A stretch of 44,542 nucleotides of DNA. It comes from Chara braunii (Eukaryota > Plantae > Charophyceae). The notes beneath the pieces are model-generated. The model made no database searches, was not told where the DNA came from, and worked only from the letters and a program-made list of their open reading frames with translations. The stretch is from positions 3,665,378-3,709,919 of the forward strand of contig BFEA01000019.1 in the NCBI GenBank assembly GCA_003427395.1. The letters run 5' to 3'. Every line of letters begins with the position of its first letter. Positions within the stretch are counted from its first letter, which is position 1. A program made the translations under genes and the position numbers. Below are positions 15,901 through 40,851 of the stretch, in pieces.

Positions 15901-18900
15901 TGTCAATCCGCAGTGGACTGTCGAGAGACATCTACGTCGGATACGGAGCAGAAGTATCTCGGCCGCCATTCACATTTGCATGTGGAATCTATGGATGATA
16001 ATGAGACAGCTTTACACATCCCGACGGAGGCACCTGCAATCATCAGCAAAGTTTGTGCCAATGCTGCAGATGTTCGAGCTGGAAATGATACGCCTTTGCA
16101 GTCACTGTCTGTACTGTATGAACTGGTTGATATGTCAGCCAGAGAGAACTCGATCAAGAGACTATGTTTGTTAGAAGAAAAGAATGATGTAGGAACGGCA
16201 TGGGAAAGGGTCCAGATCCCTCTGGTCAATCACAACGGTGACGTTCTGGAGCTATCCTTGGGTGGGGAGAGAGAGGAGGTTTCTGAGTCCTGGCATGATG
16301 GGCAAGAAGGTCCCTCCATGTTTCCAGATTCAGAAGAATGCGACATGGTCATCAATGAGGACAGTGAGAAGGAGAAAGAGTCTATGCATGGCCAGGGTAC
16401 GATCCCATGTTCCCTGGCCATGGCAGATGCTCAAGAAGAGCAGGAGCTATCTGATCGAAAAGATGAGTACAACATGCTGGATATTTCAGAGGAAAAACAG
16501 GACAAGTTGCAGCAGCAGCAGCAACAGACGGAGGAGGAGAAGGAACAGCAAGATGGGAAGGAGGAGGCGGACAAGAACAACGAGGTGGAGGATCAGTGCG
16601 TTTCAATGAAGGAGAAGTTTGCAGGGCCATCAGGAACCAGTCTATGGCTTTCCTTGGACACTCGTGCTTCAGAGACCTTTACAGCAATTCCACGGAAGAG
16701 TGACAGTGTGGTTCTCTCTTCAGAGAATGATGATTTTGTGTGTCCAGAGCCAGTTTTTTCTGAGGGAAGGCAAGAGAGTCAGTGGGGGGAACTAAGCTGC
16801 CTCTCCATTCCACTTGTACATGACAACTACATGGAGACCTGGACAATTCTCCTAGATGGGCAACATGCAGGGGTTGATGCCAGAAGCGCAAGCCTGATGC
16901 CAGAACACAGTGTGCTTCCTCTGGAATTGGGCGAAAGCAGAGCAGTGCAACTGGAGGCGGAGGGGGAGGTGGTGGAGAGAGTGATCGTCTCATCTGAACA
17001 GGGAGCTCCTTCCATGACAGGGACTCAACTGGTGCGGGAGAATGCTCCCGCGGTTTTAGTGGATTACGATGGCCTGCTACGTTCAAATTGCTCAGGTCGT
17101 CCTTTTGCCGATGCAGTGGGAACGTTCTCACCGCTATTATTTCCAAGTTCAGAAAGGAGAATGAACTTTGAGGAGAATGGTACTCCTCCAATTGACCATG
17201 CCAACACCACTCCCTTTATTATGGGCTTAAGCGACTCTTATGAATCTTGGAGGGAGCCGTCTCCTGAACCTGCCAAGCCGTTATCTCGACAGAGTCTCGC
17301 AAGCGAAGGGCAACAGAAGAAGGGTTCCGATACGCTAGAGGAGAACAAGGCTGAGGTTGATCTGTGGGACGAAGCGGATGGACATGTGGTATCTCAGCTG
17401 GCTCTTGTCGAGAGCGGGGAACAGTTGGTTGATCTGAGAGGCCAGTTTGCCAGGGATAGTGGGGAGAGGACGGAAACGTCAGGTCTGATCATGACCTTGG
17501 CTGCTCCATTGCATGTCCCGGATTCTGAACGTGATGGTATGAACTCAGAGACTCCTGATGACAGAGCGTGTGTGGCCAGGGTGGAAGAGGATGATGATGA
17601 TAAAGGCTATGATGGGCCACTACTTTCAGGAGGGAAGGGAGGGAAGGGGAGCATCCGGTCTGTGCCAACGGCTACCAAGAAAGAGGACCGTGGCACTGTC
17701 CATGCGGAGCATGAACAGAAGTGCTTAGTGCCTGGACCAGAACCACCACGTTGCGAGGAATCAATGGAAATAGAGAGATGGAACGTTCCCGCTAACGAGG
17801 ATGGCACCATGACGGAGGAGATGGTCCAAGAGTTTGCCTGTCTCAGGGGTGGAGGTGAGACAGATGTGTACATTCCAGTTGCTTGTGTTGATGCAACAGC
17901 CTTGTTAGGAGATGATAAGGGACCTGGGTTTAGCGGTGGCGAAGAGGATGCTCGGTCTCATGTGTTACCTGCAGAGGATGAGAGTTGTGTGACCACTGGT
18001 GCCCCTCCAAACTGTGATGATGGTTCTAACTTCAGCTTGCTACAGGTCACAGCGACTACGAGGAGTGATGCACATGTTCCGACTATATCTGGGGAGGTGC
18101 AAGGTGACGCTACCGGTGCCCCTGATGTTCAGGTTCAGGTTCATGTTCACAGTCATGAATCAGTTGGTGCCGTTGACAAGGCCTCTAAGGCCATGACAAG
18201 CTCGTGCGATTCCATTAGGCTTATGGCGATGAATAGCGGTTTCGTGGTTCATGAGGACATCTCAGTGCTGCCAAAATCAGCTGTAGTCGATCCCCAGAAG
18301 GGGACCATGGAGCTAGTGCCTATGGAGACTGGAGAGAACAGAAGCTCCTTTGAAGGAGAGGAGCAACACCTATCGAGTGTGCTACTACAAAAGAGAAAAG
18401 CTGCAACGGAGGTGGACCTGCAGCCTGTTTTTGAAGAGAATGTAGTGCTACGCTCAGTGGGCGAAGGTAGTATGCAAACTTCATTTTTCACTTCCTCTGT
18501 GACAGATCAAGGCAGGCGCACTCTCATAGCAGATTGTGTAAGCGGGGACAACGGGCCCTCTGGTGACCAGGCAATGCACAGGGGCATTGGCAGCAGGGAG
18601 AGGGCGACGGTGTGGGAGACATCAGTTCTTATGCCTGAAGGAAAGGTGGAAAAGGATGTTGTAGATGTGATGGTGACTCAAGCAAGCTCGTTCGGAGACA
18701 ACGCTGCAGTTTCAAGTGAGAAAGGTAACCTCTTACTAGGAGGAGAGAGGAGTGTGGCAACCCAGAGTCTTATACTTAGGAGGCAGGAGGATACCATATC
18801 CGAGACAGGCGTTCGTTCACTCCCAGTAGAGAGTAGTTTATCAGTCCCTCGCATGCAGAAGGCGGGAGACGTTGGTGGACAATCCTTACCAAATGGTGGT

Positions 18901-21900
18901 GGACAGTCCTTGTCAAATGGGGAACCTCAAGGGGTGTCAATGAAACACTGTGAAGAAGGGCTTTCTCCAGCGGATGACAAAGAGGTATCGGTTGTTTCGT
19001 TGCGAAGTCGCATGGTCGAGCTAAAGGCCAGCTTCTCGGATCGGATGGAGGACTCGGTTCTTCTGCCAGATGGAAGGCAGGGTTCCCTCGCTGACACCGG
19101 AGGCCCAACTCCTTCGCCGCGTTTTGCTGATGCTGTCGACTGCATAAGCAGTCGAGAGGAGGGCTCTAACGTGTCTGCTTCAATGCATGTTACTGCAAGT
19201 CCTTTGCCTTACAAGCATGGCAATCTGGAAAGGCGAAGAGAGGCCGGCAAGGACCGTTCGGTCCGAGGAGAGATCTCGGGACAATCACATCCCATTTCAA
19301 AAGAAGATCTGAATGGCTATAGTGTTATGTTGTTGGGCACCGATGCGATGGATGTACCAGATGATCGACGTCTTCCTCCAGAAGAGGAGAAGCCTGCATC
19401 AAATGTTATGGAGGTGGTGGAGAAGGAACAGACTAGTACTCCGGTGAAGACCCCAGTTCTTCCCTCTGAGCACACTACTTCTTTGGAAGTCGGTGCCATT
19501 CTTTTGTCTGCAGATCAGTCGGCGGCGACCGCACATGCTAATGCATCTGGCTCTCATAACGATGAAGAAGATACTGCCCATTTCAAATCCAGTCTACTGC
19601 AGCCTAGTTATAGCAGCCTTGAGCATTTTGTGCTTTCGGCGGCTGACATTTTGAAGGGCAGCGGACTTACAAGTGATCAGACAAAACTTACAAAAGCCTC
19701 GCCTCATGTTACTGCGTTCGAGATGGATGATGGGACAAATGCTGGTGCTGCGCAGTCCAAATGCTTTGTTGTGCTCTCCTCATCGACAATTTCAAGCGCC
19801 AAAGGCTGTGGGATCGGCAGCGACGCGAAGGACGTTCTCAATCCTGTTTCCTGCTCACCGAACTCCAAAAATACGTCATCGAATTTGGAGAACTCGGACG
19901 ATACTCCATTGCCTTCAGCAAAAAATGTCAAACTTGCTGCATTAAAAAACGTGGAAGATGGTGCATGGGATTCAGTGGATGCAGAAAATGACGTATCGGA
20001 TGCTCTGTATTCCATCATCCAACGCTCGCAGCGTTTGAACGACGAGTGCAATGTTGAGCGGTTTCTGCTGTCAGCGGTCCATGTGTCAGAGGGAGGAAAT
20101 CAGGCTGCAAGGGATCAAGGTTCAGACGGCCAGAATCATGACAGTAATGTGGTTTCTGTCTTCACTGCCAACGTGGAGGGCAGCTCTAGCAGCCTAGTCG
20201 CTTCAGGACATAAGGGGAAAGAGGATGCAGGATCATCGTCGATGTCACTGAACAAAGTGATGTTCGCAAGGCCTGCAGGGGAAAGTGAGGCCAGAGGAGG
20301 AGGTCGACGTTGGACGATGGAATGGGGAACAAAGGGTGCTCTGGCTTCTCGTGGGGGGATTTCACTGCCAGAGGACTGGGAATTCACTGAAGAATCTATT
20401 TTGCGGGCCCTTGAGATGGGACAGCAGCTAGTGCAGTCGTTGCAAAAGGCACTGGATGAGGAGCGGAATCTAGTCAAGTCGCTGCAGAAGTCACTTTCCG
20501 AAGAGCAAATGCTTGTGGAGCAATTAAGGGCAATGCTCGGGCGGGATTACAACGACCCCAATGCACAGCAGGACTTGGCTGGTTCTATGCGCACCATATC
20601 GGCAGCACCAGCAGAACCCAGTGATGATCAACCTTCTGAGATGACATCAGGGCCCGGCCACGACCTCTATGGCGGTCAAGAGGACATGGTCGAGCTTGCG
20701 GAGAATGTAAAAGAAAGTGTTCCCGAGAACCTTGAAATCGACCTCCACGATCAAGCGCTTGGTCCGGTAGAGGAAGCTGAAGCTGAGAACGAAGCAGCAG
20801 CAAAAAAACAAGTGTCAAAATTTCCACCTGAGAATGAGGATGGGGATGAACAGCTGCCAAGGAGTACGCTGAAGCATGCATTAGAAAACAAGTACGAGAC
20901 TTGGGAGACTTCTTCTTGTGGTCCCAGTGTTCCACCAAAGGGTCATCCGGAAACAGCGAACTCATCACAGAATGTGGACTTGGCAGAGACGGCAGATGGA
21001 GAAGTAGTTACCGGGGTTCATTCTGTGGAGCCAGGTCCCGAAACCAGCTCTCCGAAGGTCCAGGAAGAAAAAGAGCGCTGCGTAACCAAAGAACCTGAGC
21101 TAAGCGTTCAAGATGATCTCCTGAAGTGCGAAGCGTTTGCAGTAAAGGTGGCGGAGGATGACGAGCCGGAGCCATCAGATGGGACGGAGATAGATCCCCA
21201 AGCTGATACCTCGGTAGACATAAGTGCAGGTGACCCGATAGAGAGGGATCATGCAGCCTTGATTTCGTTGGGAAGATCTGGGCCGATACTTGACCCGATC
21301 GAGCCAGAAACAAACAAGTTGATGATGACTGCGCCAACCAAGGTACGAGGGCTTGCAGAGCACTGCCACTCCGAACAGGCACTCCCTGGAGAGGAAGAAG
21401 ATACCATATCTGTGCCATCTGGTAAACGAGGAGATACTCTGGAAGGTGCCATGGACGAGGAGGAGGATCAGCTGGAGCCTTGGCAAGGCAGAGAACCGTC
21501 CGAGGGAGAGAGTTTTGAAGAGTTACCTTTGAGAAAGGAAGAGGGTGAAGCCCTAGAAGTCGGCAAAGAAGGAAATGATCTGGAATTGTCACAGGCTGGG
21601 GGTGCAAGCGAAGAGTCAAGGGAGCTCTTGCGTGCAGAAAAAGAGCAATGGTCGCATCTACAGACCCCGGACCTCGTCGGAAAGGATGCGATGGACTCTC
21701 TGTCTTTGAAGGAGGTGACCCTGAGCGTTGAGTGGCCATCGATGGAGGAGGTCGAGGAGGTCGATCAGTTTGTTTTGCAAGACGACGAGGATCAGCGGTT
21801 GCCTACGGAGACATGTGACACTGTTGGGAACAACATGACTGACTCCCCATCATTGCAGGACTTGGAGGAGGCAATAATCTTGGAATTCCTGGACTGGCAG

Positions 21901-24900
21901 GAGGAAGACACTCAACGTCCTTCTCAACTCCTGCCAGAAGCTGATGAGGATCTATGCGTGAATACATGGCCAAAGCGCATGATTGAGGAAAATGCGATGG
22001 AAGCCCCACCTCTGCAGCAGGGCGCACTGTTCTCAGGGTTCTTGAAGCAGGAGGTGGACGATGCTTCACAAGGGGGCAGGAACAGGGCGCACCGTTCTCA
22101 GGGTCAAAACCATGATGAGAGTGGGGCTTGGCTGACACAGATACAGGAAACTATTGGAAAGGATGGGGATCACCTTCTGACTCTGACGGAGTCAGATGCA
22201 ACGCTTATGTGTGAACCTCCGGTGGCAGACCAGGCCCAGGACTCCTCACACCACCAGGACCCCGCACGGGTTCAGGAGAAAGACTGTGATAACCTCACTC
22301 AGTTATCAGCAGTCCTCGTGGATCAACCGCCCTTCCTATCAGCAGTCCTCGTGGATCAGCCGCCCTTCCTATCGGCAGTCCTCGTGGATCAGCCGCCCTT
22401 CCTTACAAAGCAACAAGGGCTGGATGTGTCTCCTTCAGGCGTGCAGGATGTGGCAAACATATTGGGGCCTTTGAAGACGGAGAAGGTTGATGGCTGTTTG
22501 CAGGCCAAGGAAAAGGAAAAGAGCGGAGAGCTGTTCAAGCTAGAGGAATACGAGGATGTCGCTGCCCAGGTAAGGGGACAAGAGTCCGTGCGAAAGGACG
22601 TTACAGCGCCGCCTCGAGTCTTGCAAGCAGCTGCAAGCATTTTTCGTTCTCCGACGGTGGAGATTGTTGACTCTTGCCAGGCCCTGCAGAATGCTGAAAG
22701 GAATGTGGCAGATGTGCTTCCAGGCGAAGGCAGGCTGCCAGCAGAAGAGGAGGGGATTAAAGAGTCCATGCAAAAGGAGGATGGTAAGGAGCGTCTCCCA
22801 GTTTTGCGAGCAGCGTCAAGTATTGTTCATTCTGTGATGATGGAGGTTGTTGACTTTGGCCAGGACCTGAAGAAGAATCTTGGGAGGGACATGGCAGATG
22901 CTGCACTTCCAGGCGAAGGCAGGCAGCCAGCAGAAGAGGAGCAGACTGTGCAAAGCTCAGGACGGGAACACAAGACTTCACCAGGCCCGAAAGCAGAGCA
23001 TTCCTTTTCAGATAGCGCTACTACTGCAAGGGTTTACCAAAACGAGCCCGATTCCAGTAGTGTACTGAAAGGTGTCGGCATGGAGAAGCCCGTACGAAGT
23101 CCGATGGAAAGCGCAGCAGAGATGAGATTGGAGCACAAGGCCGTGGAGGACAGGACCTCGATCAACGACAGAAACTCCACTGCTGAGCCTGCTGCTGAGG
23201 ATGGGCAGCCTAGTGGTGGATCGCTTTATGAGGAAAGCAGTGTGTGCCAGAACAGCGGTCACCCGAGGCAAGATGACCAATGCATGCAAGGGTCACAGGA
23301 CTTGCTGTCGTCCCAAATGCCATCCCCGAAATCGGACTTAGAAGCCGCTCCGGTTCCAGAGGAGGAACTGGGCATCGTGCAGTCGGTATTAGAGAGTGGA
23401 TCACAGCAGCAAGTGATGATGGCCTTGGAAGAAGACAGCAACGTTGCGGACCCGACATCCTTGCGATTCCGAGAAAGCAGATCACAATCAGGGCGCAATG
23501 TATCAAACGAGGAGAACGACGAGTCTCAAGTGCGATCTCAAGAAGATGGAAAGTGTGCCGACAAATCTCCCGAAAAAAGGCACACAGAAGCAGAAAGTCC
23601 AGCCCACTCTGCAGCCACAGGGAAAGGGATGGAAGAAGGGTGTCTGAAAGGTGATGGCTGCGAGGGTATCCCGGAGTCCGTCGTCCTTGAGGGATCTGTT
23701 ACAGGGGTGCATGAGGAGCATAGCTCGTCTGAGAGTCGTCAGCTGGCTATCGGATCAGCACAAGTGGAGGCAAGGGACACAGTTGTGGCTGCTCCAGCAT
23801 CAAGCATGAAGGCGAAGGTGACTGTGGACTTGGATGGCGCCGACAACCGACTGCCATGTGGGCAACTTCTGCACGAGGAGGAAACGGTCGCACTACCATT
23901 AGTCCGTGTTGAAAAGGAGGGGAACACTGGCAAGGGCATGATAATACAGGCAGAAGGAGATGTTGATCGCTTGGCTCGGGCAGAAGTGATCGACTATGTG
24001 AGAGGTCAAGATTGGGTTGGACGTGGCGAAGGGAAAGAAGCGGGTGATGTTCCATCACTGCTAGAATCCCTACTAGTCAAAGCGGTGAAGGCATGGGAGA
24101 AGAGAAGGGTTGTTTCGATTGATGAAGAAAATGCCCGTGCAAAGAAGGAAAGAGAGGGCATTCACAGGAGGAGGATAGAAAGAGAAAGAGACAGAAAAGA
24201 GAGAGAGGCAAAGGTGGAGAGCAAGCAAAAAGAGGCGAAGTGGACATCCATGACGCCTGTTGGGAGGGAGGAGGGAGGAGAGACTGTAACGGATCTTCAG
24301 ATGCATTTCAAGACAGAGGCCAAGGATCCAGATGCCGAGGCCAAGAGGGATGCCAAGAGGGATGCGGCAGATCTTCCGATGCATTTCAAGACAGAGGACG
24401 ACGATTCAAATGCAGAGAAGACTGAGAAGGAGTCAAATACTAAGAGGGATGTGTCTGACGACGGTACTGGGCTACACAATGCAATGGACACGCATGCGAA
24501 TTTGCCGACGGAGGCAAAGACAGGACAGCTTGAGGTTGTTACAAAGACGATCGCTGGCACAGACATGAAGATGAAACCAAAAGCTAGAACAGACGATGAA
24601 ATCAAGGCCGGCACTGAGGGGGGTGAGATAGTAGTGCCTAAGAAGTTAGGGCATGTTTTAGCTACACAGGTTTGGACAGAGGCCATAAAGGATACAGAGA
24701 TTTTCTTCAAGCCAGAGGCTGATATGAAGGAGGAGGTAGACGCTAAGACAAAGGCGGTAGAAAGAGAGGTGAGGATGAAAAAAGGGGACAAGGAGGAAAG
24801 AGAAGGAATGGCAGTGAGTGTTACGGAGACATGCGACGAGAAGGTCAAGGAGAAGGACAAGGTGGAAAAGAAACGAATGAAAGTGAACGTCACAGAAACG

Positions 24901-25698
24901 TGTGACGAAAAAGCGGAAGAGAAGGAAGTGAGTGAAACAAATGGGCCAAAAATGAACGCTGCGGTGGAAGCTAATAAGACAGACAGGGCGAAAAGAGAGG
25001 TGGGGATGAAGATGAAGATGGACAGAGAGGAGAAGGAAGCAGTGGGAATCAAGGAGACAGAGAGAGCGGAGAAAGAGAGAGAGGAGGAGGAGGAGAATTA
25101 CGAAGTGGGAATGAAGGTGACAGAGAAGTATGAGAACATGATAGAGGAGAAGGGACTGAGTGAAACAGATGGACTACTACTGGAGATGGAGGAAGGGAAA
25201 AGGGAGGTGAAGGATGCGAGAGAAAAAGAGAATGTAGAGAAGGCCGCATCTGGTCCAGTCAAGGACGTCGTGAGAACTCTGGCGTCCAGGCTCTTAACAG
25301 TAGTAGAGGGAGGCGTCCCTCTGGTTCACCCACAGCTGGGGAAGAAGAAGTCAGAAGATGGTCATGCAAAGAACAGCGGCAACAGTCCGAGGGTCACTTC
25401 AGATGCAAGGTGGGTGCAGAACGCACGGACGGACACGGACATGCAACATGTGGTACGCGATGAGCAGGTGCCTTTTGCCGGGAGAAGTGAGACGACAGAA
25501 ATCATCGACGAGAAAACGGTTAAGAGCATAGCAGTGACATTAGAGAGCAGGCAAAGGATGCAACCAAAGGACGCGGTGGGGAGGAACATTACGGAAGCGG
25601 CGGAAGGCACGGCCTCTTTTCGTACGGTTTCCTCGGAGCAAGACGCGAGAAAGATCAAATCGGCAATCAGAATACAAGCTTCATGGCGAAGATGCATG
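9958..25698 (+). CDS. Giant coding exon A (~15.7 kb, 5,247 codons from first in-frame ATG) of a ~8,178-aa IQ-motif protein; mostly low-complexity/disordered (Pro tracts, E/D/S-rich), ending in the first IQ motif
   Basis: Stop-free frame 9823..25788. Simple repeats inside it are frame-preserving trinucleotides (CCT, GAG, GAT), whereas the flanks are full of homopolymers and dinucleotide runs. It ends ...IRIQASWRRCM|GTAAGT at 25698/25699 followed by poly-T, so the ORF tail VSFFLFFFFF is intron read-through. True start is uncertain: the ORF track begins at a TTG and upstream exons are possible. Confidence 0.85.
22303..22401 (+). repeat. Coding tandem repeat 33 nt x3 (LSAVLVDQPPF)
   Basis: Three near-identical TATCAGCAGTCCTCGTGGATCAGCCGCCCTTCC units. 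Confidence 0.9.
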
Positions 25699-26235
25699 GT
25701 AAGTTTTTTTCTGTTTTTTTTTTTTTTTGAAGAAAAAGAAAGGATAGAACGAAATATCAACAACAGGGGAGAAGTTAAGTCTCTTTAGAAAAAAAAAGAG
25801 AAAAAAGGCAGCAGATTTCTGGCAAAAAAGATGTCTGGCATGCTCGTTCGCTGGCATCCTGCTTGGAGAATGAGGGAGCATGTGAGATAGTAGTGGAAAG
25901 AGGAAAGACCAACAGCAAGAGAGCAGCAGAAAGGGGGAGTAAAAGAGATTGGAATGGCTGTTATTCTTGTTCGCATGAGAGAAGCAGGTTGATGTGCTCA
26001 TGTAATCTTTCTTTTCTTAGAAAAAAAAAATACAAAGACGCAAGGGTATGGAGGTCAGGATATTATGACCTAGACTCTTGGAGGTGGAAAAGGAACCAAA
26101 AAATGTTGCTGTCCAGCATAGAATGCTGGAGCCAAGCCCTGAGGTTGCATGTCCATCAAAAAAAAAAGAAAACATAGACTCGTTGTCAGCCATGGGAATA
26201 TCAGTGAGAACCTCGAGCAAGGTAGCACCATCCTA

Positions 26236-26340
26236 CAGTCTTCACCCGAATAGAACGCACGGTCATTATAGCTGTATTTGGGGCAACTTCCGCTCCAGAT
26301 ACAGCTATAATTATCGGGCGTTCTATTCGGGTGAAGACGG
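26236..26340. mobile_element. ~105-bp palindromic MITE, TA-flanked (Tc1/mariner/pogo-type), family 1, in intron 1
   Basis: TA|CAGTCTTCACCCGAATAGAACGC...GCGTTCTATTCGGGTGAAGACGG|TA; long TIRs that extend to TTATAGCTGTAT/ATACAGCTATAA. Confidence 0.8.
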
Positions 26341-26747
26341 TAGCCACTGACGCCTACCAACCGAATGGAGGAACCGACCAATAGGAGCAGACTATACAGG
26401 ATTTTGCTTACGAAGACAGTCAACCCAACCAACAGTGAAGGAAGGGAGGAAGGAGGTGGGAAGGGAGGAGGAGGGAGAGAGGGAGAGAGGGAGGTGGAGG
26501 GAGAGAGGGAGGTGGAGGGAAAGGAAGGAAGGAGGGAAGGAAGGGAGGGAAGGAAGGGAGGGAGGGAGGGGAGGGATGGGAGGCAAGGGAGGGAAATGAA
26601 ATGAAATTAATTAGGCTGCAACAGGGTAGGACTACCACTCGTCTAGGTGCGGAGGTGTTGGGACTTGGTCTTTCTCAGGTGGACAATACCTACCATGTGC
26701 GCATTTTGTGATTCTTTATTTATGTGGTTATTTTAAGCCCCCACGGT

Positions 26748-26953
26748 CCTCCAGTACAGTACTTTTCACCCTTCGTGTGCCGATCCTGGCCTGGAATTGC
26801 CCTGCGCGGCATGTGCCCAAAGAAAAGGGAACCGCTGTGGGTCTTCTTTTGGCTGCCGTCGCCAGCCATTTTGCCCCAGTAGGCCAACCCCAGAAACTTG
26901 CACCTGTATGCGTGCCGCATTGGAGAAAAATGGCTGGGTACTGTACTGGTGGT
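26748..26953. mobile_element. MITE family 2-related copy in intron 1
   Basis: CCTCCAGTACAGTAC...GTACTGTACTGGTGGT|TTAA inverted termini. Confidence 0.55.
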
Positions 26954-27091
26954 TTAACATTTTCTGACTTTTATTAATTTTTTAATATTTTTAATATTTT
27001 TATTGCATTTGCCGGGCCTTTTGTGATTTCTCCTGTGACTTCCATGTCATGCTCACATTTACCCCATGCGTCCGCTGTGGGATTATTGCAG

Positions 27092-27139
27092 GCAAGGAGA
27101 GCATACGAACGACAATTGTATCTGATTGAGAAGTTGCAG
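27092..27139 (+). CDS. 48-nt phase-0/phase-0 microexon encoding ARRAYERQLYLIEKLQ (linker between IQ1 and IQ2 plus start of IQ2)
   Basis: TTGCAG acceptor (AG at 27090-27091), CAG|GTGAGT donor at 27140, branch-like CTCAC at about 27052. Length is divisible by 3 and it completes two IQ motifs spaced 23 aa apart when joined to the flanking exons. Confidence 0.85.
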
Positions 27140-29385
27140 GTGAGTGGCCTGCTGCGAATTATAGATGGTAACCACTTCCACATGTTTTTTTTTTTTTTTT
27201 TTTTTTTTTTTCCCCTCCCACATGGTCATGAATGTTACATAAGGATTGGTTATTTCAACTTATTTGAAATTTGAAACAAAAAAAGAAGAAAGATGCACAG
27301 TTGGGCACCGTGTAGCCTGTTTTAGAAAGAGTGAAGACTCCGATCTTCTGAAGACCTGCAAATCGTTACGTGCAAGGACAAATCGTCTGGCTTTTTAGGA
27401 GGGCATGAACTCAGGGCAAACTCACACGCTAAGCCTGGTCACGTAGCCCCCCGCAGTCACGCGCAGCGCAGTGTGAATATGCCCTTTTTGGAAGTTTTCT
27501 CCTTTTTTTTCTATTTCTAAAGGGCGACAGCCTTCAGGCGTCATCTTCACACTGACCGGCCCCAGTTATATTCAGACTTATCTACTGACCTGAGTTGAGC
27601 AGGATTCGAACTGCGATGTGTATTTCAACAGTTTTTTTTTTTTTTTTTTTTTAAGTTTTTTTGGATGTTAACGATCATGGATCTTCCAACCATAGTGGGG
27701 AGAGGCATGGGTGTGTTCTTTTTATAAATTTATTTTCTTCTGATGTGTTCCACTGGACTTGTGTCTCCAGAATGGAAACTTAGGATTTATGTAACACTGG
27801 GGGGGGGGAAAAAAGGAACGGAGTTCAAAATTCGAGTAGAATGCATTTAAAATTTAAATAAATTAATTTTTAAATTTTTAAATTTTAAATCTTCCATCGG
27901 ATTACTCCGGCAAAATTGCTTGGAATTCAGTTGAGAGTCGAGACTCGAGAGTTTTGTCTTCAGATTCTAGACCAGGATTTACAAACCCTCGCTTGAAAAG
28001 AATTGTGGTAAGATGCGTGCGCTTCAGACAAGACTGGCTGGCACAAATGGATCACAGTTTAACGGCGTTAATGGGTCGACGACTCGGCGAGTAAATTGAT
28101 ACCGCCGTTAAACTGTGATCTAGATCACAGCTTAACTGGGTTGTGCTAATGGGTCACGTTAGTGGGTCACGTTAATGGGTCACGTTAATGGGTCACGTTA
28201 ATGGGCACAAATGGATCACAGTTAATGGGTTGCGTTAATGGGTTGTGCGAGCGCTTCAGACAAGACTGGCTGGCACAAATGGATCACAGTTTAACGGCGA
28301 CTCGGCGAGTAAATTGATACCGCAAGGTGAGGAAACCCTTAGGTGTAGGCGTAACGAAATTGTAGATAGATGTAAATCAATTCGACACGAAACCCTTAGG
28401 TGATCTAGCCATGAACGGGTTGAAGGGGCCGGGACACAAAAAAAAACACGCAGCGCAAGAACAGAGTTACTCTCTCATGCCGGTTCTCTATGTCTCCCTC
28501 TCCCTTAACTTCTACTCTCTCTTCCCCTACCTCTCTTTATAGTCTGGCGTGACGTTCCTCTACTTTCGTAGCACTTGACCTACTCCCTTCGACTACTACT
28601 ACTCCATAGCCACGGAGGTCATCGTCCTCACCCTCAAGATCCACCTCTTCAACACACAGCTTGCCTAACTCACCCTCAGGACGGAGCAGCAAACTGCCGG
28701 TTGGATGTGCCGGCCGGCCTTCTCATGACACCGAATGATGTCTTCATGACTCCCGGCCTCCCGTCCCTCGCTCACTGGGCACATCAGCCTGTACCGGTGC
28801 TCTAGACCTAATCCTCCCGGGGGACCGGTCCGGGACACAAAAACACGCAGCGCAAGAACAAAAGCTAGTTCACAGGCATAACACCCAGACACTCGGGAAA
28901 AATAGCGATCGAACTCAAACTTGAAATCTTCAGCGAACTGCAGAAATCTCATACTATGTGCATTGAAGGACTGCGTGGGCACAAGGAACCTCCCAAGTTG
29001 TTTTCTTCACTACAGTGAGCTTTTGTTGTGCGCTCGTTTTGACAGAAGCGAATTCAGGCGACACACCGACACCTCTTTTAGCATGCAAGTTGATGCCACG
29101 ACAAAACCCTTGTGGGGGATTGCGGTTACCGTAAACACCCTTTTAGCTAGTGTTTGAACTCTGAAGGAATCATTTTGCTTCCCCAAAGCAGCTAGTGCGT
29201 TGCAACTGTATCGATCCCAGATTTACCATGGAATTTTTTTTTTCATCCACTCTTGCCCAAGAGATCTTGTTGATTACCTTTTTTCCAGCGGCTTGACCTC
29301 TTTGATTCAATCTCATGGATGCGATCACTCATTTAATAATCGAATGTTGTTTCATCCATTGTTCACTCGTCTTCTCTTCATCCAG
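27140..29385 (+). other. Phase-0 spliceosomal intron (2,246 nt)
   Basis: GTGAGT...TCCAG ends; contains poly-T runs and tandem/direct repeats. Confidence 0.8.
28018..28323 (+). repeat. Intronic direct repeat enclosing a 13-bp minisatellite (GTTAATGGGTCAC)n
   Basis: GCGCTTCAGACAAGACTGGCTGGCACAAATGGATCACAGTTTAACGGCG occurs at about 28019 and 28251; the tandem units lie at about 28147-28243. Confidence 0.8.
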
Positions 29386-32300
29386 GCTGTGGTGAGAGGG
29401 TACTTTGTCAGGAAGTACTCACCAAGAGCGGTGTGGTTCATGGGCCAGATTGTTAGGGCAAGAGCCAGGGCATTAGAAGCAGAGAGAGCGATGTCAATCA
29501 TTGCGTCGGGAGGGGAGGAGCCTGTTGTGGACATGGTGCACCAGTTTGAGTCTGTAGAGGTAAGGCAGAGGAGGCGCATCCGACAGGCTGCGTTGGCACG
29601 CGCACGAATGAGGTCCAAGAGCTGGAGAGAGGGTAGTGGGAGGTGGAGTGATCTCGGCAGCAGCAGTGGGAGTGGGCGTTTATGGAGTGGGGACGGTGGC
29701 GAAAGCAGCAGCGGCGAATTGGCAACGGCAACTAGCATAACGGTGGATCCAAGGAGGAGTTCGGGTAATGCGTGGGGAATTACAGACGAGTTCAGAGACA
29801 TTGGAACGGACACCGAAGAGAAGGGTTCGAAGGGTTCGAAGGGGGGGTTCAAATGGAAGGATAAGCGGCTGGAGCAACTGCAGGAGAGAATAGCGAAGGC
29901 AGAGGCAGGGCTTGCGAAAGCTCGGGCGCGGAAAGCGCGAGTGAATGCATCTGAACGACGGCCTTGGTCTGTCTTAGCTGCCATAAAGGAAGGGAAGTGG
30001 TCAGGGCGTAGTGCCGATCAGCACAGCAGGTCAGTGGTAAAGGTAAGTCCAGGAACGGAAAAGTCCACAGAGCTCCCTCCTGCCACGGTGAGTCCCGCAA
30101 AGAAGATGGGATGGTCTTCTGGGCCCAAAGTTTTGTCGTCGGGACCACAGTCTGTCCCTAGGAAGTCTCCAGAACCAAGCCTGACAGTGGCGGACGATGA
30201 GAAGAAGGAAAAAGGAAGCGGAAGCGGAAGGGGAAGGAAGAACCTCGGTGCAAAAATCGATGAACTATATGGGAAGACACTGGGGCGTAGCTGGGGGAAA
30301 CACAAGGGACAGCAGCAGGTTGTTGGATCAGATGTTGCTGACACAGAAGGCCAACCTGAGGACCAGAGGCGGCAAGAGCTCGAGCAGGCTGCCGAGAAGG
30401 AAGAAGAAAGTGTGCGGAAATTGGCAGACCTGCGCGAAGCGCAGAAGCTGGCTTCTCTTCGAAGAGACGAGGATCGTACTGCGGCAAGAGAGAGAAAGGC
30501 TGCACGATCGGCAGAGCGCCGCCGAGATGCAGAACAGGCTGCCGAGCGACGTCGTGAAATTCAGAACCTGTGGGAGCAGCGACGCAAAGCCGAAGAGACA
30601 TTGCGAAGGAGGGAAGAGGCTGAGCAACTCCGCGGCACCGAGGCCACAAGTTTGACAAGCTTGAAAGCCCGAAATAGCGGTAGGGCAGAGGCGGTCGAGA
30701 GTGGCGGTGCAGCATCTGAGCTGCAGAAACAACTTGAGAAGTTTTCGGCACGGCGAAGGAGAACGGAACTGGCTGAGGAGGAGCGCCGGAAAGCTGAAAA
30801 GTCTGGCGAGCTGAGGGCACTGGATATGAGGATAGAGATGCTGGAAAAGGAAGATGGGATGAAACGAGCAGCAGCGCAGGCAGCAGACCTCAAAAGGCAG
30901 TTCGAGATGGCTGAAGAGGCGAGAAGGGAGGCAGAGAGGGCCGAAGCAGAAAGAAGCGAAGCACAGATGTTGACTCAAGGGCAAAAAGATGTGGAAAAAG
31001 CTGCAAAGCTACACAGCGACTTGATTAGGAAAGAGCTTCTCCGCCGTGAAAGGGAGAAGGCCGCTGAACAGAGCAATGAACTTGAACGGACTTTGGCAGT
31101 CATACGAGATGGAGTGAAGGCACTTGGACGCCGACGTCAACCCAATTCAAAAATGCAAAACGTTAGTCCGCTTGATGACCTGCGGCCAAAACAAGATAAT
31201 GCAGAGAAGGTCGATACGAAGGAGGAGGGAAGCAGTGAAGAACCTGAAGATGAGGTCGGGAGGATTGCTCGCAGTGCGCAAACACGGTCGCTGACTCCAG
31301 CAGCAGGGCCATCCTCAGTACTTGCTGCAGTTTCCCATCCTGGAAAGGAGGATGAGGAAGGCTCATTCATGCTTCGCAACGGGGAGGAGAAGCGGGCAAA
31401 GCCAGGCAAGAATGTAGGGCGCCTGTTTCCGGAGTCTTTTGCCGGAGACGGGGGCGAGCAGGCTCATCAGAGCAGCGACAACCAGCTTCAGAGTGGGACC
31501 GAGCGAGTACAGAGTGAGATGGAAGAGATGGCAGTGAGTGAGCTTCGTAGTACACAGCAAAAGGTTTTGAACAGGGACGAGAGGGAAAAGGGTGATGAGG
31601 AGGAGGTACGCATCTCCGGTGATGGCAATGCCCCAGGCACAGTAGTAAGTGGGGAACCAGAGATGCACGTTTTAGAAGCGCAAGGGGAAAGGAGCATCAA
31701 AAGAAATGCTGACATAAGGAATCCAGAGAGTGTGCCCGTGACGAAACAGGTGCGATCCACGACAGTAGCAATGAGAATAGCTCAGCTGCAAAAACAAGCA
31801 ACAGTGCAGAAGAGCCGAACGGAAGAGGCATCATCCGTGCACGTGCCGGTAGGAGGACCCAAGAGGGAACCCACCATAGAGGAGAGGAAGGAGAAGAAAG
31901 GGGTAGTTGAGGCATTAAAGCCGGTTGCAAGCCTCAAAGGAGCATGGCAAGGGACAACACATCTTGTGGTGGCGCCTCAGAAGCCAGGGGAGTTGGGAGT
32001 TTCCATGGAGAAGAAGGCGGGTGAGGCACCGATGCCGGTCTCAGACCTCAAAGAAGCATCACAAGGGGAAGCGCATGCCGCAGAGGCAACCCAGAAGTTA
32101 GTGGAGAACGAGGATTTGAAAATGGTTAAGAAACTGCTGCAGAAGGTGAGCAAGGCAGTCCACATGGGTGGTAGTAAGGGTGGCGTGGCAAGCAAAATGT
32201 GGCAGCCTCCAGAGAAGACAGAGCATCGTCCCAGCAAGGTTCGCGTTGCCTCCGCGTTACTTGATATCGGAGCACAGAAGGCTGATCAGCTGCTTTTGGA

Positions 32301-35300
32301 GGCTGTGAAGGCAAGAAGTCTTCGTTGGGAGTCGGACGACACAGGCGCATTGCAGGTGAATTCGAAGAAAGCCGAGCAGCTCGGCAGGGAGCAATCTCTG
32401 CCATCCGTTACGAAAATCGACTCGCAGAAAGGAAGGGACTTCGATTCCAAGATTCGCAAGGACTTGAAGAAGGTGTTTGACATGAAAGGACAGGACCAAA
32501 TGTGGGTGAAAACAACACCATTGAGCAGCAGGGTAAAGATGCGAGAAGAGACGGGCATGGAGAATCAGCTATGGGATCATTCTTCAGGTAAGGCAACGGC
32601 AAACAAGGACGCGAAGTCGCCAAGGTTGCAGCAGGGTGAGAAGGAGGATCAAGCTTGGTTGGAGGTTGAGAGACATGAGCAGATGCGACGGGAGGCAGAG
32701 AAGAAAGCAGAGAAGCTGCGGGCGGAAATTGAAAAACGGATAGAAGAGCTGACGCTGGCGACAGAGAGAGAGCAGCAACTCTGGCTAGAAGTGGAGAGAG
32801 AGGAGCAGGTCCAGCTGGAATCGAAGCTAAGAGCGCAGCAGTTGCGCCTTGAGGCAGAAAGACGCCTGCAACAGGTGGCGCTTGACACGGAGATAGAGGA
32901 GAGGAGGCAGTTGGAGACCAAACAAAGGGCAGAGGAGCTACGGTTGGAGGCGGAGAGACGACTCGAGGAGATGACCCAAAACACTGAGAAAGAGGAGCAG
33001 ATGCAGCTGGAGGCAAAGAGAAGGGCAGAAGAACTGCGGATGGAGGCTGAGAAACGACTGGCGGAGCTGGCTGTGGAAGCAGAGCGAGAGCAGCAGAGGC
33101 AGTTGAAGGCTAAGAAAAGGGCACAGGAGCTACGGCTAGAGGCGGAGAGACGGCTGGAGCAAGTAGTTCTCGACGCGGAGAGAGAGGAGCAGGCCCAGTT
33201 GCATTTGAAGAGAAGAACAGAGGAGCTGCGTTTGCAGGCAGAAAGGAGGGCAGAGCAGCTGAAGCTTGATGCTGAAAGAGAGGGACAGCTGAGGTTGGAA
33301 GCGGAGAGGAGAGCAGAGGAGCTGGTGCAGGAGGCTGAGAGAGAAGAGCAAGCACGCGTAGAGGCTGAGAGGAGAGCAGAACAACTCCTACAGGAGGCAG
33401 AGAAGAGAGTTGAGCTTCTGTCAGAAGAGGTTAAGAAAGACGACAGGATGAAACTGGAGGCGGAGAGGAGAACAGAACAGTTCAGGACAGAGGCGCAGAG
33501 ACAGGAGCAACTGAGGAGAGAAGCTGAGAAGAGGGTAGAGCAGATGCGTCGGGAAGCTGAAGAGCAGGAGGTTGCGCGGTTGGAGGCGGAGAAGGCAGCA
33601 GAGGTGCTGCTGAAGGATGCAGAGAGGAGGGTCGAGATGTTGCAGCTTGCAGGTGCAAGAGACGAAAAGCTCCGTTTGGAGGCCGAGAAAAGACTGCAGC
33701 AGCTCAGATTGGAAGCATGCCAAAAGCAATACCTGCGCAGAGAAGCCGAGAGGAAAGTGGAGCATTTAGGAATCGCACTGGAAAGAGAAGAGCATGCATG
33801 GCTGCAGGTAGAGAGAGCCGGCAAGCAGTTGCTGTTCGAAGCAGAGAAGCGAGTGAATCAGCTGCACCTGGAGGCTGAAAGGGACAAGGAACTCCGGCTT
33901 GAGGCTGAGAGGAAAGCTGCACAGCTCAGGATGGAGGCAGACACAAGAGCGAAGGAGCTTCAGCGCACAGCGGAGAAAGAGGAGAAACTACGGAAAGAGG
34001 CAGAACAAAGAGTCGAGCAATTACGCGAGGAGGTTCAGCGTAGGTTTGAGATGCTGAGGCAGGAGGTAGAGAAACAGCAACAGCTTCAGGTCATTGCTGA
34101 ACAGAAAGCAGAGGAAATGCATCTGGAGGCTGAGAGAGCAAAGCAGTTACGGGAGGACGCAGAGAGCAGAGTCAAGGAGAGGCAGATGGCAGCACAACGA
34201 GAGAAGCAACAGCTGCTGGCAGCTGAGAGGGCCGAGCAGCAGCGACGGCAGGCTGAGATGGAGGAGGAGATGAAATTGGAAGCCAGCAGAAAGGAACAGA
34301 TGAGACTTGAGGCTCAGATGAGGACTGAGAAATTGCAGCTTGCTGCAGCAAGACGAGTAGAGCAGCTCCGTCTGGAAGCTGAAAGAGAGGAGCAGCTCTG
34401 GAAGCAGGCGGAGGAGCAAGCAGCTCAGCTTCAGCTTGAGGCAGAAAGGGGAAATCATCTTCGGCTAGAGGCCGAGAGGAGAGCAAACCAACTCAGAGAG
34501 ATGCGCCTCGAGGCCGAGAGGAAAGCTGAGGAGCTCAGGCTTGAGGCAGAGAGAGAGGATCAACTTTGTTTGGAAGCTGAGATGAGAGCTCAACAGTTCC
34601 GCACGGAGGCCGAGCAAAGAGCTAGGCAGCTGCGGCTCGACACGAAGAGGAAGCTTGAGCTCCAGCGCCTGGAGTCAGAGTTAGTGAACCAGATTAGGCT
34701 TGAGGCTGAGAAAGAGGACTCGATGAGGCTCGAGGTCCTTAGGATGACTGAACAGCTGCGCCTTGAGGCCGAAAGAGAAGAGGTCCTGCGCTTCAAGTTG
34801 GAGATGCAAGCTGAGAAGGCCCGAATGCAGTCCAAGCGGGAGGAGCGGGCTAGGCTGCAGGCCGATTTGAAGACAAAGCAGGTCCGCATGCAGGCAGAGA
34901 GAGAGAGGCGAGCGCAACTAGAGGCTGAGAAACTGGAAATGTTGCAGCAAGAGTCGGAGAGGGTTCAGCAGCTGCGGTTGGGCGTCAGCAGAAACAAGGA
35001 ACGGCGTACGCCGCCGCCTCTCAGGGAGAATAAAAAGTCAAAGTCCAGAAGAGAGGAGACACTTGAGTTGAGGGCAACGAGCGAGGAACGGCTCCATCGG
35101 CAGCGAGAGGCTGAGATACTGGATCAGTTTACGGCTAGGGTGGATGCAACAGAGGAGAACCAAAGTGTTAGGGTTGAGAGAGCTGAGCTGCTGCACCTAT
35201 TGCAGGAAAGTGCAAGAGGGAGATTATCAGGCACAAGGAAACCGGAACAGCTGGAGACGGAGTCCAAAGATGAGAAGCAGGCAAAGCTGGAGGGCAAGAG

Positions 35301-38133
35301 AGAGGGGCAGCTGGAGCTAGAGGAGGCTGAGATGGAGCATCTGCCATGGGAGACCGAGAGAGGCGAGGAGATTCTGCAAGATTCGACCAGGGAGTCACAG
35401 ATTTGGCTGGAGGTTTGGAAGGAGGAGGAGCTACTACTGAAGCCAATGAGAGAGGGCGAGCCAAGGCCAGATGCGACGAACGAGGAGAACATGCACCTAG
35501 AGGCAAAAAGTGCAGGTCACCTTTCCCCGGAGAGAGAAAAGGACGACCAGCTTTGCCTGAAGGGTGAGAAGAGGGAGCAAGCAAATATCATAATGGCGTG
35601 TGAGAGAGAATCGTGGAAGGGGGTGGAGGAAGTGAGAGAGGACCTGTTGTGTAGGTGGTTAGAGGAAGAGGAGGAGCTGCAGCTAGAGGAAGCGAGGGAA
35701 TGCATGCTGAGCCTAGAGGCACAAATGGAGGAGGGCCTTTGCCAGGAGGAAGGCAGAAACTACCTCTTGTTCGAGGAGGGAAAGGCAGCGGAGAGGTCGC
35801 AGAATCAGGCTGAGAGAGCACAAGTAAAGACCGGGATAAAGTGGATGACAGACGGCCTTCCGCACCACCAGGAACCGCACGCTGGGGATGATGTGCAGTC
35901 AGAGCAGTTGATGAGGTGTCAGGAGAAGCGGCATGGAGATGCTGATGGACGAACAAAAGCGCTAGGAGGAGAGACGCACAGCGAGCAGCGCGCGCCAAGC
36001 ACGGCAAGGAAGCAACAAGAGCAGCTGCCGACCCAAAGGGAGAGAGGTCAGGGGTGGCAGTCGCTAAGGAAACGGGACGGAGCTTTGCAGGCCTCGCAGG
36101 AGGATGGGGACGATAGGAGCAATGGTAAGAAGGGGAGAGAGAAAGGCAATGGGGGAAACAAAGAACAGCATTTGTTGTCAGATGGGCTGCGCCGGCTGGC
36201 AGAGGCAGAAGGAGAGCTGTGCCGTGAGGCGGGAATGGTAGAAGAAATGATAAGGTTGAAAAGGAACAGAGGGATGGAGGAGGAGGACGGAGCGTCACAC
36301 TCACACACCCTATACCCAGGGCAGCCTACGACAAGTACCGAGCAACCTCGCACAGATCCTCCTAAGGCCACGATGACGGCAAACGCAGGTCGCCAAAACA
36401 CCCTGGAGCTTACTAGACAGACGGAAGACTCGTCAGAACAGCGGGAGCGAGAACCAGGTCCTCAGAAGTCAAGTAAAGGGAAAGGAGATGTGTTGACGTC
36501 ACGACTATTTGGTGCAGCTAGGACACAGGGGAAGCCAGAAGGTGGTGTAGACATGCAATGGTCTTTCGAGGTTGGGGTATTGAGAGATGGGGGGGACACG
36601 GTTGAGGGTGTTCCCGGCACAGGAGTGCAACAGTTGCGAGCCACTGCAACATGCCGCGAGGCAGCTCGTCTGGGGGCTGGTGCCAATGAAGGTGAAGATC
36701 CTACCGTTCAAACACAGACATTGTCAGCAGCAGAGCGGCACCCCGAGGACGGCCGAGTTGAAGACGAAGCGCATGGCCTTCTCTGGAGGGAGATGCATGC
36801 AGCAGTCGACATCGCCACAGAGGCAAGACGTGTGGGGAAGGAGAGCTCCGACGAGGACGAGGGAACCTGTATACACGTGGAGAAGCCGGCAAGGAGACGT
36901 GAGCAACCTCATCTAAGAATTGAGAACGTGATGGAGGAAGCACAGCACCATACATGGCCTCTACTGCAGGGTTGCACCCCCCGACGGTCGGCGGCCCTTG
37001 ACTGGTCCGCTGCCGACCCGCCAACCGATCGGCTCGTTAATAAGAGAAAAGCAGACGACCTGTCACAAAGGCAAAGTGAAAAAGAACAGGGTCAGGATCA
37101 ATCAAGTGAAGCAAGAGGACCTACCTTGGATTCACAGAGGGTCGGCGCCGCCATCAGGAGGGAAAGCGACAAGCTCGGGAGAAACGGAGGCAGTGTTATC
37201 GACTTGGTGGGACAGACCGAGAGGAGGACGGAAGAGCTGCGCAGACAAAGGGAGAAAGAAGGAGAAGGTTGTCAGCAGCTGAGCAGACGGAAACGAGTCG
37301 AGTGGAAATCGGACTCAATCTGTAACTCGGATTTCAGGGGAAAAGCCCCAGAGAGACACCAAGAAGACGGTGTCGTTTCTGACATGGGTTGGATGTTCGA
37401 GTCCGGCATACTGAAAGATGACCACCAGACTGCAATTTCTGACAGACGAACAACAAGAACACCGCCACCGACAACAGCGACCGAGGAGCTCTCTCTTTTC
37501 GGGGACAGTACTGAGCAAGCCGGTCATCCTGTTGTTAGAGCGGAGAGTTCCTCCTGCCGGAGAGAGCATGATTCCAAGGCAGAAGCCCCAAAACGCGAAC
37601 ACGACAACGACATCTGCGAAGAAACAGAAGCAGCCATCGAACTTGAGACGGAACGCATCGCGGCGAACGCCAGCACAGCAGAGAAGGAACCATCGGCAAG
37701 CACCCGGCAAAACGCGGTTGATTTGTGTCCTGGGCAAGATGCCAACGTAGAGCAGGAGACGGAGAAAGATAAAGATGAAACAGAGACAGAGACAGAGAGG
37801 GACAATACAGTGGCAGCCGAAACGTTTTGGGGCGATGACGAATGGGCTAGTCGTTTGCTAGCAATGAAGCGGTTCAACTCCTGGCTGGATCACGAGCTCG
37901 GGAGTCAGTGGGAAGGATTCAATTTCTCGGATTTGGACCTCGTGGCCCTTCTCAACGAAATGTATAAGATTGTGGAGGACATGAAGCGCTCTCATTCCGA
38001 CTGGACGAACAATATGTTAGATGCGAGGAGAGATTGGATTACAAAGTGGGATTCCAACCAGGGTCTGGAAGAATTACTCAGAATGGTAGTAGCAGCTCAG
38101 AAGGCGGCAATTCCTCCTCCTGATCAAAGTTGA
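29386..38133 (+). CDS. Giant coding exon C (8.7 kb, 2,915 aa + stop): IQ2 completion, basic/helical segments, long charged helical rod, disordered region, Trp-rich C-terminal domain
   Basis: Pyrimidine tract CTTCTCTTCATCCAG|GCT at 29385/29386, in frame with ORF 29200..38133. Starts AVVRGYFVRK and stops at TGA 38131-38133. ORF residues before 29386 look intronic. Confidence 0.85.
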   Translation, partial: AVVRGYFVRKYSPRAVWFMGQIVRARARALEAERAMSIIASGGEEPVVDMVHQFESVEVRQRRRIRQAALARARMRSKSWREGSGRWSDLGSSSGSGRLWSGDGGESSSGELATATSITVDPRRSSGNAWGITDEFRDIGTDTEEKGSKGSKGGFKWKDKRLEQLQERIAKAEAGLAKARARKARVNASERRPWSVLAAIKEGKWSGRSADQHSRSVVKVSPGTEKSTELPPATVSPAKKMGWSSGPKVLSSGPQSVPRKSPEPSLTVADDEKKEKGSGSGRGRKNLGAKIDELYGKTLGRSWGKHKGQQQVVGSDVADTEGQPEDQRRQELEQAAEKEEESVRKLADLREAQKLASLRRDEDRTAARERKAARSAERRRDAEQAAERRREIQNLWEQRRKAEETLRRREEAEQLRGTEATSLTSLKARNSGRAEAVESGGAASELQKQLEKFSARRRRTELAEEERRKAEKSGELRALDMRIEMLEKEDGMKRAAAQAADLKRQFEMAEEARREAERAEAERSEAQMLTQGQKDVEKAAKLHSDLIRKELLRREREKAAEQSNELERTLAVIRDGVKALGRRRQPNSKMQNVSPLDDLRPKQDNAEKVDTKEEGSSEEPEDEVGRIARSAQTRSLTPAAGPSSVLAAVSHPGKEDEEGSFMLRNGEEKRAKPGKNVGRLFPESFAGDGGEQAHQSSDNQLQSGTERVQSEMEEMAVSELRSTQQKVLNRDEREKGDEEEVRISGDGNAPGTVVSGEPEMHVLEAQGERSIKRNADIRNPESVPVTKQVRSTTVAMRIAQLQKQATVQKSRTEEASSVHVPVGGPKREPTIEERKEKKGVVEALKPVASLKGAWQGTTHLVVAPQKPGELGVSMEKKAGEAPMPVSDLKEASQGEAHAAEATQKLVENEDLKMVKKLLQKVSKAVHMGGSKGGVASKMWQPPEKTEHRPSKVRVASALLDIGAQKADQLLLEAVKARSLRWESDDTGALQVNSKKAEQLGREQSLPSVTKIDSQKGRDFDSKIRKDLKKVFDMKGQDQMWVKTTPLSSRVKMREETGMENQLWDHSSGKATANKDAKSPRLQQGEKEDQAWLEVERHEQMRREAEKKAEKLRAEIEKRIEELTLATEREQQLWLEVEREEQVQLESKLRAQQLRLEAERRLQQVALDTEIEERRQLETKQRAEELRLEAERRLEEMTQNTEKEEQMQLEAKRRAEELRMEAEKRLAELAVEAEREQQRQLKAKKRAQELRLEAERRLEQVVLDAEREEQAQLHLKRRTEELRLQAERRAEQLKLDAEREGQLRLEAERRAEELVQEAEREEQARVEAERRAEQLLQEAEKRVELLSEEVKKDDRMKLEAERRTEQFRTEAQRQEQLRREAEKRVEQMRREAEEQEVARLEAEKAAEVLLKDAERRVEMLQLAGARDEKLRLEAEKRLQQLRLEACQKQYLRREAERKVEHLGIALEREEHAWLQVERAGKQLLFEAEKRVNQLHLEAERDKELRLEAERKAAQLRMEADTRAKELQRTAEKEEKLRKEAEQRVEQLREEVQRRFEMLRQEVEKQQQLQVIAEQKAEEMHLEAERAKQLREDAESRVKERQMAAQREKQQLLAAERAEQQRRQAEMEEEMKLEASRKEQMRLEAQMRTEKLQLAAARRVEQLRLEAEREEQLWKQAEEQAAQLQLEAERGNHLRLEAERRANQLREMRLEAERKAEELRLEAEREDQLCLEAEMRAQQFRTEAEQRARQLRLDTKRKLELQRLESELVNQIRLEAEKEDSMRLEVLRMTEQLRLEAEREEVLRFKLEMQAEKARMQSKREERARLQADLKTKQVRMQAERERRAQLEAEKLEMLQQESERVQQLRLGVSRNKERRTPPPLRENKKSKSRREETLELRATSEERLHRQREAEILDQFTARVDATEENQSVRVERAELLHLLQESARGRLSGTRKPEQLETESKDEKQAKLEGKREGQLELEEAEMEHLPWETERGEEILQDSTRESQIWLEVWKEEELLLKPMREGEPRPDATNEENMHLEAKSAGHLSPEREKDDQLCLKGEKREQANIIMACERESWKGVEEVREDLLCRWLEEEEELQLEEARECMLSLEAQMEEGLCQEEGRNYLLFEEGKAAERSQNQAERAQVKTGIKWMTDGLPHHQEPHAGDDVQSEQLMRCQEKRHGDADGRTKALGGETHSEQRAPSTARKQQEQLPTQRERGQGWQSLRKRDGALQASQEDGDDRSNGKKGREKGNGGNKEQHLLSDGLRRLAEAEGELCREAGMVEEMIRLKRNRGMEEEDGASHSHTLYPGQPTTSTEQPRTDPPKATMTANAGRQNTLELTRQTEDSSEQREREPGPQKSSKGKGDVLTSRLFGAARTQGKPEGGVDMQWSFEVGVLRDGGDTVEGVPGTGVQQLRATATCREAARLGAGANEGEDPTVQTQTLSAAERHPEDGRVEDEAHGLLWREMHAAVDIATEARRVGKESSDEDEGTCIHVEKPARRREQPHLRIENVMEEAQHHTWPLLQGCTPRRSAALDWSAADPPTDRLVNKRKADDLSQRQSEKEQGQDQSSEARGPTLDSQRVGAAIRRESDKLGRNGGSVIDLVGQTERRTEELRRQREKEGEGCQQLSRRKRVEWKSDSICNSDFRGKAPERHQEDGVVSDMGWMFESGILKDDHQTAISDRRTTRTPPPTTATEELSLFGDSTEQAGHPVVRAESSSCRREHDSKAEAPKREHDNDICEETEAAIELETERIAANASTAEKEPSASTRQNAVDLCPGQDANVEQETEKDKDETETETERDNTVAAETFWGDDEWASRLLAMKRFNSWLDHELGSQWEGFNFSDLDLVALLNEMYKIVEDMKRSHSDWTNNMLDARRDWITKWDSNQGLEELLRMVVAAQKAAIPPPDQS
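32640..34980 (+). repeat. Coding tandem repeat: L(R/Q)LEAERR(A/L)E(E/Q) units, 96-nt/32-aa super-repeat
   Basis: LRLEAERR-type starts at 32842, 32938, 33034, 33130 and 33226 (exact 96-nt spacing); degenerate 10/11-aa units continue to about 34980. Confidence 0.85.

Positions 38134-38485: not shown

Positions 38486-38549
<64 letters not shown>

Positions 38550-40646: not shown

Positions 40647-40649
<3 letters not shown>

Positions 40650-40711
<62 letters not shown>

Positions 40712-40807: not shown

Positions 40808-40851
<44 letters not shown>

Follow-up and report, generated by a model that had tools for sequence, protein, structure and literature searches.

A locus of the charophyte alga Chara braunii carries two giant open reading frames (ORFs) one behind the other on the same strand, and the question that it raises is whether a segment of only 48 nucleotides (nt) lying between them is the exon through which they are joined into a single gene and, if so, what that exon helps to encode. 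The locus lies on contig BFEA01000019.1 of assembly GCA_003427395.1 (forward strand, positions 3,665,378 to 3,709,919); this whole stretch of 44,542 nt is called the window below, and all coordinates are counted from its first letter. Our analysis, which draws on sequence evidence, suggests that the 48-nt segment (27092..27139, + strand) is a genuine coding microexon, most likely included constitutively, and that it supplies the middle 16 residues of a putative IQ67-like domain for docking calmodulin (CaM) or calmodulin-like proteins (CMLs) within a giant gene. We assign this reading a probability of about 0.7.

The anatomy of the gene follows from its frames and splice sites. The first giant ORF (9823-25788, + strand) has 5,321 codons and the second (29200-38133, + strand) has 2,977. 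Giant exon 1 (9823..25698, +) is an open frame of 5,292 codons whose 5' limit is taken as the ORF start, and its 3' end reads ...AGATGCATG immediately before gtaagt. It is followed by intron 1 (25699..27091, +; 1,393 nt, phase 0, GTAAGT...TTGCAG), by the microexon, which is flanked by ttgcag upstream and gtgagt downstream, by intron 2 (27140..29385, +; 2,246 nt, phase 0, GTGAGT...ATCCAG), which lies at a CAG/G site, and by giant exon 3 (29386..38133, +; 2,915 codons plus stop), which begins with GCTGTG directly after tccag and is preceded by a pyrimidine-rich tract. The span from 9823 to 25698 (25698-9823+1) holds a whole number of codons, 5,292, and the first base of exon 3 lies a whole 62 codons into the second ORF (29386-29200). 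Since the exons thus end on whole codons in both giant ORFs, both junctions are in phase 0 and removal of the 48 nt would be frame-neutral, as the original prediction had stated when it described the microexon as symmetric (0/0). The coding total across the three exons is at least 8,223 codons, and the translations of the three pieces around the junctions read ...KIKSAIRIQASWRRCM, ARRAYERQLYLIEKLQ and AVVRGYFVRKY....

When these pieces are joined, they make a tandem pair of IQ motifs, neither of which is complete inside one exon. Codons 1-16 of the IQ67-like region (25651..25698, +) close exon 1, and their end encodes residues 1-9 of the first motif, IQ1 (IQASWRRCM). The microexon adds residues 10-11 of IQ1, a 12-residue spacer and the LQ of the second motif, IQ2, which intron 2 interrupts between its codons 2 and 3; the remainder of the region (29386..29478, +) then provides residues 3-11 of IQ2 (AVVRGYFVR), followed by a spacer of 15 residues and a third motif that is degenerate. 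Both assembled motifs (IQASWRRCM/AR and LQ/AVVRGYFVR) fit the pattern [ILV]QxxxRxxxx[RK], and their starts, read from the separate exon translations, are 23 residues apart. Junctions, frames and translations therefore agree with the earlier proposal of a tandem IQ module that is formed only by joining three exons via a 48-nt microexon, with two IQxxxRxxxxR motifs at this distance. That skipping would damage both motifs, another part of the same proposal, is also borne out, as residue 11 of IQ1 and the opening [ILV]Q of IQ2 would go.

Elsewhere in the two giant exons there is no credible complete IQ motif. A motif scan found none within exon 1, and three acidic matches in the rod-like part of exon 3 compare with 1.2 expected by chance. 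Pfam searches were run on each exon separately. The 20 residues at the end of exon 1 matched the IQ family PF00612 at 17.0 bits (E 0.0049, profile positions 2-14 of 21; gathering cut-off 20.3 bits), the match being cut by the end of the exon, and the head of exon 3 alone gave no Pfam IQ match. The best match of the exon 1 tail in the PDB was the calmodulin-bound IQ peptide of IQCG, which was non-significant (E 0.42), and the exon 3 head obtained only spurious PDB matches to armadillo repeats, all of them to its loop. This head is predicted to be helical over residues 2-10 and 13-40, with a predicted local distance difference test (pLDDT) score of 89-95 in the core.

How often would a segment with these properties arise by accident? 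The 3.7-kb interval between the giant exons (25699-29385) contains 289 candidate exons that are bounded by AG and GT, keep the frame and are free of stops. Among them, 27092-27139 is alone in offering a basic residue at position 11 of IQ1 together with the [FILV]Q of IQ2. By this two-feature test (basic residue plus terminal [FILV]Q), about 0.4 matches are expected by chance among the 289, and a sharper test against the IQ67 consensus of Abel, Savchenko & Levy (2005; Table 5, motif 1; PMC1368998) was therefore made, in which each exon was scored separately and positions 26968-27004 were masked, as they also were for the scoring of codon usage. Against IQ67 codons 17-31, the microexon scores 21 and the next-best candidate 3; it is also first of 11,333 stop-free windows of 15-17 codons on both strands (z 5.1), and the best window matches the AG and GT boundaries exactly. 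The best-scoring window for IQ67 codons 1-16 is formed by the final 16 residues of exon 1 (tied first among 8,177 windows, z 4.4), and that for codons 32-62 by the opening 31 residues of exon 3 (47 versus 26 for the next best, rank 1 of 8,147, z 6.2). Judged by sequence, then, the IQ67 match of the microexon exceeds chance.

The splice signals bear on the same point. On the + strand of the interval there are just two GTRAGT sites, namely the donors of exon 1 and of the microexon, and the longest AG-free tract (26926..27089, +; 164 nt) ends at the microexon acceptor, while a 95-nt AG-free tract runs up to the acceptor of exon 3. No local repeat includes the microexon. It could be argued that the 48-nt segment is no exon at all, so that either exon 1 is joined directly to exon 3 or each ORF is a gene of its own, and that its likeness to the middle part of IQ67 is due to chance or is a decayed relic. 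Such an argument would rely on the chance rate of the two-feature test taken alone, on a codon usage that is uninformative here, and on the acceptor of exon 3, where in-frame read-through (29368-29388) places ..LFIQ before AVVRG and the codons ATC CAG mimic the missing IQ. However, the segment by far outscores every other candidate against the consensus, with boundaries that coincide exactly with AG and GT. Apart from the donor of exon 1, its donor is the sole consensus one in the interval, and the longest AG-free tract precedes the segment; without it, the half-motifs with which exon 1 ends and exon 3 begins do not add up to a complete IQ. The mimicry at the acceptor is probably chance, because pyrimidine-tract codons followed by CAG often yield [FILV]Q, and since the 95 nt before 29386 lack any AG, an alternative acceptor could not make the read-through IQ exonic. 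We thus regard it as quite unlikely that the segment is not an exon. In the listed sequencing runs, among them three oligo-dT RNA runs, 5-14% of the words of the stretch were present, a level at which RNA is not separable from low-coverage DNA.

If the microexon is genuine, the position of the intron before it points to a family. IQ67 is defined by three IQ motifs with precise spacers of 11 and 15 residues, and IQD genes carry as a hallmark an invariant phase-0 intron between IQ67 codons 16 and 17, the codons for residues 9 and 10 of their first IQ motif (PMC1368998). Intron 1 of the Chara gene falls between the same two codons and in the same phase, with exon 1 ending in ...IQASWRRCM and the microexon opening with AR... 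The first two IQ motifs of the domain are present, and the second spacer has the IQ67 length of 15 residues and aligns to the consensus without a gap. An origin in a coccidian or apicomplexan, for which low-complexity giant exons and long introns might speak, was discarded, since the plant-specific intron hallmark fits.

Several features weigh against an IQ67-like reading. The first spacer has 12 residues and not 11, which introduces a one-residue gap into the global alignment, and the third IQ position reads AR.. in place of [ILV]Q and is degenerate, a position at which 31 of 33 Arabidopsis IQDs have at least a hydrophobic-Gln start. In length the protein exceeds typical IQDs about tenfold, and it is acidic, the typical isoelectric point (pI) of IQDs being about 10, with acidic exceptions known. 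No further Pfam family, DUF4005 included, was found at E<=1 across both giant exons (8,207 residues); word searches and atlas look-ups returned no database relatives, phmmer of the exon 3 head (first 80 residues) gave no match among 1.84 billion representative proteins, and metagenome scans recovered no relatives. Codon-usage likelihood ranks the microexon only 71st of the 289 candidates, a score that is undiscriminating because it is based on only 16 codons. Moreover, much of the matching sequence is generic to IQ motifs, and the suggested link to IQ67 depends on a single published consensus and the position of a single intron. In view of these departures (spacer, third IQ, giant acidic protein, lack of relatives), we describe the domain as an IQ67-like variant and not as a proven IQD.

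Some of the same features would suit a generic tandem IQ pair with a 23-residue period, of the kind found in myosin necks or CAMTAs, which would be independent of IQ67 and would share its intron position by coincidence. The offset of 23 residues, compared with 22 in IQ67, favors such a pair, as do the absence of a third IQ, the fact that most matched residues are covered by the Pfam IQ profile too, and the failure of word search or phmmer to retrieve any IQD. Yet the position and phase of the intron are identical to the IQD hallmark, and the chance of hitting this exact site and phase is roughly 1% (two introns, about 63 codons). The 15-residue second spacer, with its M.Q/GQ.VR core, also aligns ungapped to the consensus, and no CG-1, TIG, ANK or myosin motor occurs in the 8,200 residues. 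A generic pair is hence very unlikely in our estimation, and although the original prediction had looked to myosin necks and CAMTAs for comparison, the IQ67 of plants fits the module better.

Whether the microexon is always included is a separate matter, and on the IQ67-like reading constitutive inclusion is the more natural expectation, because the domain consensus needs the 16 residues and because plants favor intron retention over exon skipping as their prevalent mode of alternative splicing (PMC8831610). A regulated cassette, the possible splicing switch of the original prediction, would behave differently: certain tissues or conditions would leave the microexon out without loss of frame, and a defective single IQ would switch off the docking of CaM or CMLs. 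Symmetry of the exon makes such skipping frame-neutral, exon definition is inherently difficult when only 48 nt are flanked by introns of 1.4 and 2.2 kb, and the pyrimidine tract of its acceptor is moderate (55%, versus 85% for exon 3). However, exon skipping is a minority mode in plants (PMC8831610), the donor and the AG-exclusion zone of the microexon are strong, and nearly all IQD introns are in phase 0 (PMC1368998), so that symmetry is a habit of the family and not a sign of regulation. Regulated skipping therefore appears unlikely to us. A bolder version, in which an animal-style microexon switch acts on an ancestral IQD module and 16 residues, in or out, couple a giant scaffold (>8,200 amino acids) to Ca2+/CaM-CML signaling, is speculative and, we think, quite improbable.

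Under constitutive inclusion, the origin and working of the module might be pictured as follows. The three exons would be joined in the mRNA. Intron 1 would be the ancestral phase-0 intron held in common with land-plant IQD genes, and intron 2 would be an extra phase-0 intron that splits the usual second IQ67 exon, which alone encodes residues 17-67 in Arabidopsis and rice (PMC1368998), into the microexon and the opening part of a giant exon. If IQD proteins are a guide, the assembled basic helix of about 63 residues would dock CaM or CMLs; IQ67 alone is sufficient for CaM binding in IQD20, and the IQ67 of IQD1 also docks CaM (PMC1368998). The giant disordered or rod-like remainder may act as a scaffold, as has been proposed for algal IQDs (PMC13443282). 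The charge of the predicted protein is distributed unevenly: the exon 1 protein is acidic (pI 4.8) and low in aromatic residues, the exon 3 protein has a pI of 5.7, and the module alone is basic, with pI 9.7-11.7 over its three pieces and net charges of +5, +2 and +6 along its approximately 63 residues.

Outside the module, most of the protein is acidic and seems to be disordered or rod-like. Exon 3 includes a rod of about 700 residues that is rich in E, R, A and L and has almost no S, G, P or T (32793-33409; more widely, about 32640-34980), with periodicities of 96 nt (32 residues) and 33 nt; it is probably a single alpha-helix or a coiled-coil spacer. The final 115 or so residues of exon 3 (37786-38130) are rich in aromatic residues (12 F/W/Y per 100) and look like the sole other stretch resembling a folded domain. 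An AlphaFold2 model of the last 150 residues is helical, with low confidence (pLDDT 47.6), and neither Pfam nor the atlas nor metagenomes yielded relatives of this C-terminal stretch. In exon 1, three copies of SAVLVDQPPFL are encoded by a near-perfect 33-nt repeat (22304-22403, three units, 97% matches), and a Pro/Ser-rich stretch by a (TCC)40 tract (10761-10880); both are young in-frame expansions within the exon.

Repeats of other kinds were seen in intron 2 and around the gene. A 13-nt tandem array (28137-28255) lies between duplicated blocks of 54 and 29 nt within 28014-28323 of intron 2, where a 21-nt hairpin (28050-28120) also occurs, and this region might reflect either local duplication or the insertion of a small element. 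Microsatellites of the types (TCTTTT)n, (AAAC)n, (AG)n and (TAGA)n are dense around the gene (7510-8154, 38489-38545, 40650-40974 and 44333-44403), and the giant exons are largely without them. A run of N at approximately 42486-43360 marks an assembly gap, which accounts for the apparent guanine-cytosine fraction of 0.24 there and for ORFs filled with X. An Rfam search of 27005-44542 gave no match.

If transcripts confirm the three-exon structure, the hallmark intron of IQ67 would predate land plants and be traceable to a charophyte-grade alga. The gene would also place an IQ67-type domain in an unprecedented context, namely a giant acidic protein in which an extra intron isolates 16 codons, and this would bear on the origin of IQD scaffolds. 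For gene annotation, the practical consequence is a correction of the gene model, since pipelines often pass over plant microexons; when the microexon is left out, the sole recognizable domain of the gene vanishes. As a short, delimited peptide of about 63 residues, the module also lends itself to assays against CaM and the eight CMLs already cloned from Chara braunii, where CaM and these eight CMLs bind IQ regions (PMC11662445).

Four known systems invite comparison with the Chara gene. CAMTA proteins, including CbCAMTA1 of Chara braunii itself, likewise bind CaM and CMLs through tandem IQ motifs separated by about 12 residues (PMC11662445). However, the CAMTA domains CG-1, TIG and ankyrin are absent, by Pfam, from both giant exons, including the 5,292 residues upstream of the module, and the two Chara CAMTA coding sequences, at about 4.0-4.2 kb, are far shorter than this gene (PMC11662445). 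Myosin necks share the 23-residue IQ period and dock apo-CaM or light chains on a continuous helix, but Pfam found no myosin head (motor) domain in the two giant exons, and here there are only two good motifs and an intron position that is that of IQD genes. In its size (<=51 nt), its location inside a domain-coding region and its long flanking introns, the microexon resembles the coding microexons of plants, which are easily missed by annotation; those were defined from RNA sequencing junctions (Yu et al. 2022, PMC8831610), whereas this one is supported by sequence logic. The IQ67 of IQD proteins offers the closest parallel. Differences are found in the extra intron after the LQ of IQ2, which yields the 48-nt microexon, and in a host protein of more than 8,200 residues that is acidic, lacks DUF4005 and has no significant database similarity. 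Likenesses include the basic amphiphilic helix with consecutive IQ motifs, the phase-0 intron between residues 9 and 10 of IQ1 with symmetric exons between phase-0 introns, the ARRA- after that intron, the LQA-VRG--VRK of the second motif and the 15-residue second spacer. Reviews describe the IQDs of algae as single-copy and set in long disordered regions, and the long and apparently disordered host protein of the Chara module is like them in this respect as well (PMC13443282).

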